From Salisapilia sapeloensis CBS 127946 (lineage: Eukaryota; Protista; Oomycota), in NCBI GenBank assembly GCA_023334545.1, contig JAADVB010000017.1:1-64000 (forward strand): 64,000 nt of DNA. The letters run 5' to 3'. The position numbers were made by a program, and so were the translations under genes. The first letter of the stretch is position 1. Each line of letters opens with the position of its first letter. Positions 32,072 to 37,449 of this stretch are shown in pieces. The notes beneath the pieces were generated by a model. That model saw only the letters and a list, made by a program, of their open reading frames with translations, was not told where the DNA came from and searched no databases.

Positions 32072-33199
32072 ATGCCCCCGAATTGCCGGACACGAAACTC
32101 CCGCCGGCGTTCCGTCAGCTCCAGCAGAATGTCCGTCGCGACTGTAGACTCGGAATCGATTCCGATGCTGTTCGCGACGGACGAGCTGGAGGAAATCGAC
32201 CTCGTGCCAATCGACCATCCCACAGACAAACTCATGCTTCATCACGCTCGTTCCCACTCAAGTAGTGTCGACAGTCTCGAGTCATGTGACGAACTCGTGA
32301 ATCGACCGACCGAAAGCAGTAGCGTCGATAGCACCAGTTCGAGCGTCATTGAGTTTTTCAATCGACCAAAGCACAGTGCAAGCGTCGATAGCGCCCCTAC
32401 CTTTTCTCCTTACGTACACAATCAGCACCCGCGATTATCACGTCGGAGGGGGAATAGTAACCCAGGTTTAAAAGCTACTCACTCGAGCCACTCCCTCGAC
32501 ACAGCTAGCATCGAGGAAGAGTACGTCGTTCCAGACGATACACTGCTCCGTCCAAAACCCGGGACTCGTCGACGCGTTACGTTCAAGCAGGACGAGCGTC
32601 CCGAGTCCGTCCCTCGCCCGAATATCACACTCCCGAGCTTTGATGAGCTCGTGTTCCACGTCGCCAAGTTACAGCCATCAACCGCTCAGATCAGTGAACG
32701 GCTGCAGACGATGCTCCCTCAAGATGGCCAAGAGTTCCGTCTGCCATCCATGGAGCTCCTAGTCGCCGAATTTCTCCATCGATCCGCCGTCTACCTCGGA
32801 TACGAGTTTGGTACTCGTCCGTGGTTTCCCGATTTCCAGCACGATCAAAAGTTCTCGACGAACGACGTACGTCGATGGCGTCGTCTCGCTCATCATGACT
32901 GGGCTGCAGAAGAAGAGGAGTCTCGCATCCGATCCGCATCGGTGCATGGTAAAAAAGGTATTCGACAGAGTGTCGGTGGGTGGTTACAAGAGCAAAAGCT
33001 TCGTCAAAAGTATAAAATTCGTGGTCGACGTCATTCATCTCCTGTGACCAAGGTGGATGTCGGATCCTCTCCGGTACCAGCAAGTAAAGATGTCTCTTTA
33101 CTCGTGGAAGTAGTCAATAGTTGTATGTCGTTTGGTGATGTCGCTTTCCGTCCTGTCGATATCTTTGCTTTATGCAATATCGAGATTGATGGGGAATAA
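32072..33199 (+). CDS. Hypothetical protein, paralog A (disordered Ser-rich N-terminus, RVxF motif, unnamed C-terminal domain)
   Basis: 375-aa ORF; shares WRRLAxHDW and LLxEVVN...FGD..F with the neighbouring gene. Confidence 0.75.
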   Translation: MPPNCRTRNSRRRSVSSSRMSVATVDSESIPMLFATDELEEIDLVPIDHPTDKLMLHHARSHSSSVDSLESCDELVNRPTESSSVDSTSSSVIEFFNRPKHSASVDSAPTFSPYVHNQHPRLSRRRGNSNPGLKATHSSHSLDTASIEEEYVVPDDTLLRPKPGTRRRVTFKQDERPESVPRPNITLPSFDELVFHVAKLQPSTAQISERLQTMLPQDGQEFRLPSMELLVAEFLHRSAVYLGYEFGTRPWFPDFQHDQKFSTNDVRRWRRLAHHDWAAEEEESRIRSASVHGKKGIRQSVGGWLQEQKLRQKYKIRGRRHSSPVTKVDVGSSPVPASKDVSLLVEVVNSCMSFGDVAFRPVDIFALCNIEIDGE

Positions 33200-33284
33200 A
33201 AATGAGAGAAGAGAGACAAGAGATTGTTCATGTGCATGGCAAGAAACGCAAAATTCATTTTTCAAGTCCAAAAAAAAGAAGTAG

Positions 33285-34883
33285 TTAGATCCATCCATCT
33301 TCTTCCACTAAGAACTCGAGACGTACGAGGTCATCCAGTTCTTCTAGCTTGAATAACGTGTCACCAAAGTTGATGCTCGTGTTCACGACCTCCAAAAGAG
33401 GTTTCAAGTCCGTTCGTTTCGGAACTTGAAGATCATCGTCACTATCTTCATCTTCATCGTAACTACCACTCGTACCTTCCGTCGTCGAGTTACTAGACAA
33501 TCGGACACCTCGTCCAGTTGCTTCTTTCCGGAATAAGGACGAACGGAGGAGGGACGAAGCTCGAGAGAAGGAGCCTCGAGATAGTAACGAGTCTCGACTT
33601 TCTTCCATCGCTGTCTCCTCCTTTTTCCAATCGTGTAGCGCAAGTCGTCGCCACATGCGTATTTCTTCATTCGAAACGGACACGACTTGACCGTGTTTCG
33701 TCGGGACGCCATGGAGATATGATAGACTCCGATCGAGAAACTCTTGGATCTTCGTCGACGTCGGGCGCTGATCATGCGACGCGAACTTACACACGCGCTC
33801 CAACAAGTCTTCATAGCTCTCTGCTTCCGAATACACGTCGTCACCTTCTGGATAGTAGATACATTTGTGATTAAATCGGACTTTTTTGCCGTCCTGTGGA
33901 CTGACAGACTTTGTCCGATAAAGCTGCGCAAGCTTCTCTGCTTCTTTCGCATGTTGCTTGGCGGATGAACTTCGAGAGAAACTGTCTCGATCCTTCTGCA
34001 AGTCGAGATCGACGGACCCTTTGCCTACGAGTCGAGCTTGGATCGGCAGCTTCTTCCAGATCTTGGACATGAGGTGCGGACCCTCGGCCTGGACATTATC
34101 CATGCTGACGCTCCGGTCTTTTAACGAACGACCGGGAGCTGGTGTGTCTTCATACTCGTCATCACTGTCGCTCGAGTTATATCGAAATCGAGATGGCTTG
34201 ACGACCGTTGCAACGTCATCGACAACCATGGTAGAGGCGGAGGCTGGCGTCCTCTTTCGCATGCGCTTGGTGAGAGATCGCGTCATGCGTGGCTTGACGT
34301 CGGACGTTTGACCTGAATTGGCAATACGTGGGCTAATGGCACGAGGAGATTGCTTGACTGTCGATTTAAACGTGCTATCCCAACTGTGTCGACCACCAGC
34401 GACGGGTGTATTCGCATTTTCATACTCATGCCGAGTGTCCTGTTCCTGCCGCCGATTCTGTTCATGATGCGAGCTCTTGTTGAGGAATTCCCCCACCGCA
34501 CTTTTGCTCCTAGGTGCTCTCTTTGTCGACGATGTATTCTCTTCCTTACTCTTCTTCTTCGCCTTGCGTTTTTCTCGCCAAGTCGAGAGTGAGAAGGAGC
34601 TTTTGCCATGCGAAGCACTCGCATCAGCAGCATAGTCATCTAATCCGTCTGAATCGAAACTTCCTGAATTAGAAGTCGATCGACGAAAAGATAGCGAACC
34701 ACTTCGCCCGGTGCTTGGTAAAAAGCTCTTCATACGTCGTGGGCAAAGGGAAGAATGCCTTGTCGATGGTATTGCGGCTGGCTTTCGGCGCGGCACGAAT
34801 GCGCGTGCGAGTAATATGGGACACGACGACAAGTGGTGTGGAAAGTGGCGGTGGAATGAGACAGACGAATTGACGGACGACAT
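33285..34883 (-). CDS. Hypothetical protein, paralog B (start probably MKSFLP)
   Basis: 532-aa ORF with KKVRF, EFLDRSLSYL, WRRLALHDW and LLEVVNTSINFGDTLF. Confidence 0.75.
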   Translation of the reverse strand: MSSVNSSVSFHRHFPHHLSSCPILLARAFVPRRKPAAIPSTRHSSLCPRRMKSFLPSTGRSGSLSFRRSTSNSGSFDSDGLDDYAADASASHGKSSFSLSTWREKRKAKKKSKEENTSSTKRAPRSKSAVGEFLNKSSHHEQNRRQEQDTRHEYENANTPVAGGRHSWDSTFKSTVKQSPRAISPRIANSGQTSDVKPRMTRSLTKRMRKRTPASASTMVVDDVATVVKPSRFRYNSSDSDDEYEDTPAPGRSLKDRSVSMDNVQAEGPHLMSKIWKKLPIQARLVGKGSVDLDLQKDRDSFSRSSSAKQHAKEAEKLAQLYRTKSVSPQDGKKVRFNHKCIYYPEGDDVYSEAESYEDLLERVCKFASHDQRPTSTKIQEFLDRSLSYLHGVPTKHGQVVSVSNEEIRMWRRLALHDWKKEETAMEESRDSLLSRGSFSRASSLLRSSLFRKEATGRGVRLSSNSTTEGTSGSYDEDEDSDDDLQVPKRTDLKPLLEVVNTSINFGDTLFKLEELDDLVRLEFLVEEDGWI

Positions 34884-35381: not shown

Positions 35382-35769
35382 TTACGTGCGACGGGCCGTA
35401 CGGAAACGCGGCGGAGGCGTACGGACACGACGGCCCTCGGTGGAACGCACACGGACGATACGCTGGTGGATGGCAGCTTCGACACAGTAGTAGTTCTTGA
35501 TGTAAATCTTCGGGAGCGCGTACGACTCGTACACGGAAGCCTCCTTCAAGTCACGAATGGCCGACTGGTCCACAATGTTGCTACAAGCATCAAAAGTCAA
35601 TACACACATACGCTCGTGCCATTTAATCTGCTAGACTGTCGTACCGGACAACAAAGCGCTTGATGGCCTTGTCCTTCGGGATAAGCTTGGACGTCGAGAC
35701 GCAGTGAACACGCTTGACGTGTCCACGGTTCTTCTTGTTACGTCCGTGGTTTCTACGCTTGACGGTCAT
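35382..35769 (-). CDS. RPS26: 40S ribosomal protein eS26 (intron 35581-35644)
   Basis: [18 protein letters not shown]...[12 protein letters not shown]|NIVD...LPKIY..YYCV..AIH..IVRVRS. Confidence 0.95.
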
Positions 35770-36042
35770 GGTGCCTTTGGGTCTGCGAGCTTTGGCGTTT
35801 TGAAAGATGGTGCGTAGGCCTGTCCGCCACCAACTTGCGCATCGTTTTTCAGCCACTCATATCGTTGGATTTAGAATTGTAGCCAATGAAAGGAGAAAGA
35901 GAATATGCTATGAAAGAAATATGAAAGCATTCTTTTAAGCCGGAAGGAAAGCCAAGGACGAGCATTTAGGAGAGATGCAAGGCAGTGTATATTTGTGTTC
36001 GAATGTCTTTCGTGCTTTGATTAACGTCTGCCTCGTACGAGT

Positions 36043-36353
36043 CTACTTGACATGCTTGAGAATCTCCGGCACGGACTAGTGGATCTCATCAGTATCATCG
36101 ATATATACGTTGCTATATACGAAAACGTACGCATTTGTCGATGCAGTGGAGGAAATCAAAGTATTGTCCGTCACACGCGCCGACGCCCTTGGCGTTGATG
36201 CGGTCCACGCATGCTCGGTATTCCTTGAATGAAGCTTCGCATTTCGGCTCACACTCCTTGCGGATTTGTGGCATCATGTCAACAGGTTCTTCGTCAGCCT
36301 ATACACACCCTTAGCATCTCTCTAGTACTCGTCTAAGCCAAGTAGCGTACCAT
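36043..36353 (-). CDS. UQCRH: Cytochrome bc1 complex hinge protein QCR6, 67 aa, 3 exons (introns 36299-36350 and 36076-36130); missed by the ORF track
   Basis: Spliced translation is M|ADEEPVDMMPQIRKECEPKCEASFKEYRACVDRINAKGVGACDGQYFDFLHCIDKC|SVPEILKHVK*, with the hinge-protein Cys spacing. Confidence 0.9.
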
Positions 36354-36540
36354 TTTGCAATTGATTCCGGAGGTCCTCAAACTGAAATGGACGGTTCCCC
36401 TCTACTTCTCAAAATATTATACCTACTTCACCGTCTTTAACTGTTGAAAATAAACTGGAACATTTTGGCTATATACAATAAACAAGTGAAATCGCTATTT
36501 GCGGCTGAGGGACCACCAGAATTTCAAATCGGCAGACACC

Positions 36541-37449
36541 ATGCTAGCACGGACGGTACGAGCAGTGGTCAATTCGACCGCCAAGCGAAGTAGTTTCCAC
36601 TCTTCGGCTGCTGTATGCAGTGGTAGCCTCCCACAGGTACCCTCGAGACTTTAAATGAATATCGTATTACGATATACTGACGTAAATGTAGCATCGGGAT
36701 ACCGAGGAGAATACCAAGGACACGGCGTTCGACTTTACCAAGGAGAACTACGAGCGTGTGCATGCGATTCTGGACAGGTATCCGGAGAACTACAAAGCCT
36801 CTGCTATCATCCCGTTGCTCGACTTGGCGCAGCGTCAACACGGCGGCTGGCTGCCTCTCGCCGCCATGAACAAGGTCGCTCGTATCGTCGACACCAAGCC
36901 CATCCAGGTCTACGAAGTCGCTACTTTCTACACCATGTTCAACCGGTACGTCTCTCCTATTCTACCACCTCTGTGGTCTAGATCCTGACTGCTATGGCTA
37001 GTGAAAAGGTCGGCAAGTACTTTATTCAGCTCTGTGGTACGACGCCGTGCATGATCTGTGGGTCGGAAGAGATTAAGCAGACGATTGAGAAGCACTTGGG
37101 TATCAAGGAAGGTGAGACGACGGAAGACGGGATGTTCACTTTGCGTGAGATGGAGTGCCTAGGTGCTTGTTCGAACGCACCGATGGTCCAGATCAACGAC
37201 GATTACTACGAGAACTTGACACCGGAGACGACCAAGCAATTGCTGGATGCGTGCATGCGTGATGAACCTCCAGCCATGAACAAGTGGGGTAGTCTCCCGA
37301 TGAACGGCCAATTGTCTTGTGAAGGTCCGATGGGCAAGTCGACGTTGACGTGGGACAAGGCGCCTGGTCCTGGCTTTAAGATGCGTCCGGATAGTGAGCT
37401 CGAGCCCAAGGTGGACCCGAAGAAGATCAAGGAAGAGATGCTGTACTAG
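36541..37449 (+). CDS. NDUFV2: NADH:ubiquinone oxidoreductase 24-kDa subunit (introns 36637-36691 and 36946-37001)
   Basis: Presequence, then [24 protein letters not shown] and [12 protein letters not shown]. 2Fe-2S ligands CGTTPCMIC and [11 protein letters not shown]. Confidence 0.95.

Follow-up and report, generated by a model that had tools for sequence, protein, structure and literature searches.

The specificity of protein phosphatase 1 (PP1) comes from its regulatory subunits, very few of which, to our knowledge, are known outside animals and yeast. The published consensus of the RVxF motif is [K/R][K/R][V/I]x[F/W] (PMC10454571), and yeast Reg1 binds Glc7, the PP1 of that organism, through the sequence RHIHF (PMC12520357). 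The sole oomycete protein linked to PP1 in the literature searched is a secreted effector that targets the PP1 catalytic subunit (PP1c) of plants: the Phytophthora infestans RXLR effector Pi04314 is reported to bind plant PP1c via an R/KVxF motif (PMC4740116). Here we describe two convergent genes, A and B, from the oomycete Salisapilia sapeloensis CBS 127946. They lie in a stretch of 64,000 nucleotides (GenBank assembly GCA_023334545.1, contig JAADVB010000017.1, positions 1 to 64,000 of the forward strand), referred to below as the window, and both products carry an RVxF-type motif shortly before a shared C-terminal helical domain. A first-pass annotation, made from the letters alone, had put the pair forward as a candidate new family of PP1 regulators. 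Much of that proposal held up, in that the motif is conserved and the domain is undescribed; it is weakened by Thr or Leu within the motif of the A-type proteins of Peronosporaceae and by a ΦΦ element that is not conserved. Taken together, the sequence data make it somewhat probable that A and B, members of a family restricted to oomycetes, serve PP1 as regulatory or targeting subunits. The family itself is real and undescribed; that it forms a new class of RVxF-type PP1 regulators is plausible.

Genes A and B are both intronless open reading frames (ORFs) and lie tail to tail; the ORFs, the spacer between their stop codons and the coordinates of the two motifs are exactly as first annotated (Table 1). 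A BLASTP search of the A product against the B product aligned C-terminal parts only (E = 2e-10, 32% identity across 158 residues) and detected no similarity between the N-terminal parts, which had been described as unrelated. Every element of the C-terminal series listed in the annotation was found in both proteins: YEDLLERVCKF of A pairs with FDELVFHVAKL of B, EFLDRSLSYL with EFLHRSAVYL, WRRLALHDW with WRRLAHHDW, and LLEVVNTSINFGDTLF with LVEVVNSCMSFGDVAF. By this homology A and B are paralogs, and in the organism's own genome (22.4 Mb, 1365 contigs) the domain occurs in these two copies only.

Outside Salisapilia, a search with gene A found 48 homologues (E = 3e-92 to 6e-55), which come from Globisporangium, Pythium, Phytophthora, Nothophytophthora, Plasmopara, Peronospora and Hyaloperonospora; all of them are labelled 'hypothetical' or bear spurious names. 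The names 'Sterol 3-beta-glucosyltransferase', 'protein kinase domain-containing' and 'BTB domain-containing', found on a few of them, were set aside as annotation carry-over, as no Pfam domain is recorded there. Orthologues of gene B include the protein P0049 (40% identity), an ORF in a further assembly (L004:4590-5630:-; 35% identity, E = 7e-50) and the convergent neighbour of the A-type gene in P. infestans (L016), which is B-type (E = 2e-30). The first-pass annotation had proposed a profile search with the shared C-termini. The section running from the motif to the C-terminus was turned into a profile (alignment A2, 41 sequences), which was run exhaustively against 1.84 billion cluster representatives and returned 44 proteins at E <= 0.001. 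An iterated word-indexed search with a profile of greater diversity (A4) added only proteins of Saprolegnia, Thraustotheca and Aphanomyces. The named matches are all from oomycetes (Albugo, Achlya, Aphanomyces, Saprolegnia, Lagenidium, Pythium, Globisporangium, Plasmopara, Peronospora and Phytophthora), and a few family members derive from marine metagenomes. As judged by these searches, the family is universal in oomycetes and absent elsewhere. Literature searches on six of the family's locus tags and on PP1 regulators of oomycetes turned up nothing on the family.

A maximum-likelihood tree of 43 representatives separated an A clade (18-protein core, support 97/93) from a B clade (98/98), with four metagenome sequences forming a third branch near the A clade. 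Each of the two clades holds Peronosporales/Pythiales, Albugo and Saprolegniales in the expected order. Since each paralog clade follows the oomycete phylogeny, the tree places the duplication that gave rise to A and B before the crown oomycetes. Aphanomyces stellatus has two adjacent A-type genes (P0070 and P0110; tags 4761 and 4760), a lineage-specific tandem duplication of the long paralog.

The motif was assessed in 43 diverse members, anchored on the invariant aromatic residue, by the relative entropy of each column. The anchor itself (position 0; F 40, W 3) carries 4.5 bits; position -1, at which Pro never occurs, carries 1.5 bits, position -2 carries 3.1 (V 32, I 7, T 3, L 1), position -3 carries 1.7 (R, H and K) and position -4 carries 2.6 (K/R in 40/43). 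Each of the 12 columns preceding the motif holds at most 1 bit. Downstream, positions +2 to +5 and +7 to +12 lie at 0.5-0.9 bits, with 1.3 bits at +1 and 1.8 at +6, where Tyr, Pro, Val and Ile are mixed. Across these members, [KR]-[RHK]-[VI]-x-[FW] is the sole conserved island in a variable stretch before the domain. The aligned site fits the pattern [RK]-x(0,1)-[VI]-{P}-[FW], F-to-W swaps included, in 38 of the 43 representatives, and the same proteins contain just five other matches to it in 17,126 residues. B-type sites read RRVTF, RKVTF, RRVRF, KRVSF, KQVQW or KHVQW (in Pythium, Lagenidium, Plasmopara, Albugo, Saprolegnia and Aphanomyces), and A-type sites outside Peronosporaceae read KHIYF, KHIRF, RHVHF, RHVSF, KHIHF or RVTF. 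The expectation that the RVxF motif would be conserved in homologues was thus borne out in both clades, in Saprolegniales, Albugo, Pythiales and the B-type Peronosporaceae; it failed in the A-type Peronosporaceae, where the site is degenerate. The exchanges seen (V for I, F for W, a basic residue or His before, and no Pro) agree with the published consensus (PMC10454571).

The presence of an RVxF pattern alone is weak evidence. Such matches could arise by chance in low-complexity, Arg-rich sequence of fast-evolving orphan genes, as the shortness of the pattern and the Ser/Arg-rich N-terminal parts would allow. However, the site keeps its position with respect to the domain in either clade and in every oomycete order sampled, even though its flanks are randomised, and the orthologues of both genes are under clear purifying selection. 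Because its position relative to the domain is conserved, the motif is more than chance and a chance origin of it is excluded; we regard the orphan-gene explanation as extremely improbable.

Structural predictions bear on how the motif is presented. AlphaFold2 models of A and B were built with family alignments, and each shows a compact helical domain predicted with confidence. The A model (m2ac3067cffa2) has a predicted template modelling score (pTM) of 0.64, with 80 residues at a predicted local distance difference test score (pLDDT) >= 90, and contains helices at model residues 33-41, 51-67, 81-92, 95-111, 170-179 and 189-196. The B model (mf814c303a484; pTM 0.69) has helix blocks of pLDDT 90-97, at model residues 33-40, 70-84, 106-117, 120-134, 185-193 and 204-211. 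The order of the helices is equal in the two models: they carry Y/F-[DE]-[DE]-L, EFLxRS, WRRLAxHDW and VVNxC..G..F, and a variable loop interrupts them. In both models the first helix begins 20-odd residues after the motif, which is coil of pLDDT 53-60 in A and 57-61 in B, and the domain beyond it is modelled at pLDDT > 90. The motif is therefore predicted, from these models, to be accessible in a disordered or extended segment.

The first-pass annotation recognised no named domain in this region, and our searches gave the same answer. Pfam-A returned no match near a curated cut-off for A or B at E <= 1, and nothing above cut-off for 27 further relatives (E <= 0.1 or 0.01). The weak matches to Auxin_canalis, DUF6033, TFIIE-A_C, HEAT and DUF4704 were rejected as noise or as part of a fused gene model (P0090). 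A profile search of PDB sequences gave a best E of 0.33, and Foldseek against the PDB gave no match at E <= 0.001. With VIA-align against 48,161 chains the best Z was 3.7 for A and 3.6 for B; matches in the ESM Atlas reached a template modelling (TM) score of at most 0.33, and a feature search there produced no usable match. The helical domain is of no described fold, although blank searches do not prove a new one.

Several observations weigh against a role in PP1 docking. RVxF-like patterns abound in proteomes, and the partner of a conserved basic-V-x-F could be a protein other than PP1. The A-type site is KRTRF in Phytophthora, Nothophytophthora, Peronospora and Hyaloperonospora, which falls outside the [VI] requirement, and KRLRF in Plasmopara, with Leu replacing the required Val/Ile; one Aphanomyces B-type protein reads NHVHW, without K/R. 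The strict form [RK][RK][VI]x[FW] fits both window genes but only 16 of the 43 members, or 25 with His allowed at position 2. The ΦΦ element is not conserved: a loose ΦΦ-like pair occurs 5-8 positions downstream in 29/43, and was not found in the window gene B nor in 13 others. Inspection by eye, with no formal scan, showed no SILK or MyPhoNE motif. Where the A-type protein of Peronosporaceae has KRTRF or KRLRF, its B-type neighbour retains RRKVTF, as in P. infestans (L016:4001-7175). Some Phytophthora A-type proteins have a second match to the pattern (KPVVF, KVTYF) seven residues downstream, which may reflect either compensation or a relaxed constraint on A.

These observations could be accommodated if the basic-V-x-F/W island were functional without being a PP1 dock, and either packed on its own domain or bound another partner in the manner of a mitogen-activated protein kinase (MAPK) D-site or a cyclin-type motif. 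A strict PP1 dock should not tolerate Thr or Leu for Val/Ile in a whole A-type clade that keeps the domain at ~45% identity, the behaviour of the ΦΦ element points the same way, and B-type RR(R/K)VTF also fits a loose basic-x-Φ-x-Φ docking pattern. On the other hand, outside that one clade F swaps only to W and V only to I, Pro is absent at x, and the basic residues stand exactly at -4 and -3, a residue profile that is that of RVxF specificity and unlike that of a D-site or RxL motif. A D-site is also a poor fit to the many A-type sites in which a lone K is accompanied by H or G without a spacer, and AlphaFold2 leaves the motif segment of both proteins as coil that is unpacked from the domain. 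We therefore consider a role of the island apart from PP1, the main rival reading, unlikely, though deserving of weight.

A partner for the motif is present, as the Salisapilia genome encodes PP1c. The PP1-type N-terminal domain PF16891 scores above its cut-off at two loci (80.9 and 76 bits) and, with the exons searched singly, exon 1 of one of them matches residues 8-62 of human PP1-alpha (E = 1.8e-22). Both loci are interrupted by introns and end at contig ends. The two starts (C412:138209-138678 and C1047:3425-3894) share one and the same translation from the second exon up to the end of the contig but differ in the intervening intron; the assembly may have split a single gene or recent duplicates here.

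Further, weaker matches to PF16891 also occur in the genome, and they are among the points in favour of another possibility, in which the motif is a dock for a PP1-like phosphatase distinct from canonical PP1, or PP1 is bound through the motif with A and B as its substrates or inhibitors. Conserved Ser residues in basic or acidic contexts are plentiful in the A-type N-terminal part, as expected of a phosphoprotein, and 12 of the 43 members have Thr or Ser at the x position of the motif; in RV[ST]F motifs this position can be phosphorylated, which releases PP1. Yet a conserved folded domain beside the dock would be more typical of targeting or specificity subunits, although the data at hand do not separate these roles. 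We rate this possibility as distinctly unlikely.

If A and B are indeed PP1 regulatory or targeting subunits, the basic-V/I-x-F/W motif, in a flexible segment 11-26 residues before the domain, would dock into the RVxF-binding groove of PP1c. The adjacent six-helix domain, with its invariant F..RS, WRRLAxHDW and VVNxC..G..F, would then be held beside the phosphatase, where it could bring in a substrate, fix the location or influence specificity. Paralog A, the longer one, would add conserved islands open to phosphorylation and a C-terminal tail of the acidic GW[ICL] type and, because of these additions, A and B would define two different holoenzymes. A fuller picture, which we offer tentatively and at somewhat less than even odds, is that both are subunits of oomycete-specific PP1 holoenzymes with a new helical fold, that the two paralogs target PP1 differently, and that the tail and phospho-islands of A provide a second, regulated interaction.

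The features peculiar to gene A are found at its two ends and upstream of its motif (Table 1). The conserved island upstream of the motif contains an acidic Ser cluster, RSxSMD, HLMSKIWKKLPIQARL and SVDLDLQKDRDSFSRSS, and its columns S237 to S306 are invariant or near-invariant in alignment A1. A C-terminal end of the form [DH]-G-W-[ICL] is present in 19 of 20 A-labelled tails (18 A-clade proteins and the metagenome sequence P0072). The remaining protein, P0065, lacks this end and is positioned outside the A clade in the tree. Variants following the acidic residues, from Saprolegniales through Peronosporales, include EEDGWI, DEDGWC, EEDGWL and ETHGWL, and the tail of A is predicted to be flexible (model residues 205-208, pLDDT < 50). 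At the other end, the first 50 codons of the gene A ORF have no counterpart in other proteins, and gene A lacks the N-terminal peptide MSQQAKDIYSGIKKIFP that its orthologues conserve. An upstream exon coding for the conserved start MSQQAKD was not found in the 35 to 717 bases upstream. The comparison with orthologues suggests that the real start of gene A may be Met51 rather than Met1.

Table 1. Coordinates of the A/B gene pair and associated features in the window.
Feature	Position	Strand	Description
Gene B, short paralog	32072-33199	+	ORF, 375 residues; disordered Ser/Arg-rich N-terminus, RVxF motif, C-terminal helical domain
RVxF-type motif of gene B	32567-32584	+	RRRVTF, residues 166-171
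Helical domain of gene B	32639-33175	+	~residues 190-368; two low-confidence inserts
Spacer between stop codons	33200-33284		85 bp, A-rich; run of eight A inside aaaaaaaagaag, ~33270-33281
Gene A, long paralog	33285-34883	-	ORF, 532 residues; long disordered N-terminal part with several conserved islands, then RVxF motif, helical domain, conserved C-terminal tail
C-terminal tail of gene A	33288-33305	-	EEDGWI; second short conserved motif, A-clade-specific
Helical domain of gene A	33324-33815	-	~residues 357-520; split by a variable acidic, Ser-rich loop
RVxF-type motif of gene A	33873-33887	-	KKVRF, residues 333-337; F337 invariant in alignment A1
Conserved island of gene A upstream of motif	33966-34175	-	~residues 237-306; A-type only
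ATG of Met51, gene A	34731-34733	-	possible real start
First 50 codons of gene A ORF	34731-34883	-	no counterpart in other proteins
Rest of syntenic block	35623-37449		with 32072-34883, forms NDUFV2-QCR6 (UCR_hinge)-ribosomal S26e-A-B

The local genomic context of the pair was also compared among oomycetes. The tail-to-tail arrangement of A and B recurs in two further assemblies (L003, L004), in P. infestans (L016) and in Pythium oligandrum (L017), as well as, judged by neighbouring locus tags, in Albugo laibachii and Plasmopara halstedii. Two metagenome contigs hold the pair in tandem or 1.5 kb apart. The block NDUFV2-QCR6-ribosomal S26e-A-B of the window is syntenic in P. oligandrum, where PIP5K follows B, and in P. 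infestans, there without NDUFV2 and QCR6 in the stretch fetched. Because the flanking genes (NDUFV2, QCR6, RPS26e and PIP5K) are also common to these loci, the adjacency of A and B is ordinary microsynteny. A special linkage of the two genes was ruled out, the whole block being syntenic and the pair being non-adjacent in Aphanomyces euteiches, in which the B-type gene has no A-type neighbour.

Among described systems, Pi04314 is the one from the same group of organisms, an oomycete protein with the same motif class as A and B; it is reported to be a secreted, host-translocated effector (PMC4740116). By reading, no RxLR motif or hydrophobic leader is present in the N-termini of A and B, for which no dedicated signal-peptide tool was used. 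A and B are also kept by oomycetes that are saprotrophic or not pathogens of plants, and the syntenic block around them is a housekeeping one; in contrast to Pi04314, they would act on the organism's own PP1. A second point of comparison is offered by yeast Reg1 and Reg2. The His-containing A-type variants RHVHF, KHIHF, KHIRF and KHIYF are close to the RHIHF of Reg1 (PMC12520357), and the A-type proteins resemble Reg1 and Reg2 in being long, mostly disordered and Ser-rich. The two yeast proteins carry DUF1752 (PF08550), which has no match in A or B (E <= 1) or in the 27 relatives, and the likeness to Reg1, resting on a five-residue motif, is a lead only.

The broader class of RVxF-type PP1 interactors, such as spinophilin, PNUTS, PPP1R15/GADD34 and CD2BP2/GEXP15, provides the closest general parallel. 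Like these proteins, A and B combine a motif of the [K/R][K/R][V/I]x[F/W] type, in a disordered segment, with an adjacent folded or partner-binding module, and keep the motif across most orthologues, the A-type proteins of Peronosporaceae apart, while its flanks drift. They differ by their helical domain, which matches no Pfam family or fold, and by their restriction to oomycetes. The family differs further from the proteins with an RVxF-ΦΦ-R-W string (spinophilin, PNUTS and PPP1R15) in that its ΦΦ element is not conserved, and the Pfam model of PPP1R15/GADD34, PP1c_bdg, finds no match in A, B or the 27 relatives. Should PP1 binding fail, what stands is a conserved oomycete-specific domain with an unusually clean short linear motif, of narrower interest. 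If A and B do bind PP1, the oomycete PP1 network would become accessible to study, PP1 regulation would gain a new structural solution, and there would be a lineage-restricted handle on an essential phosphatase in organisms that count major pathogens of plants and animals among them. If the mechanism outlined above holds, they would constitute a new family of RVxF-type PP1 interactors, a class that is already known and very heterogeneous.

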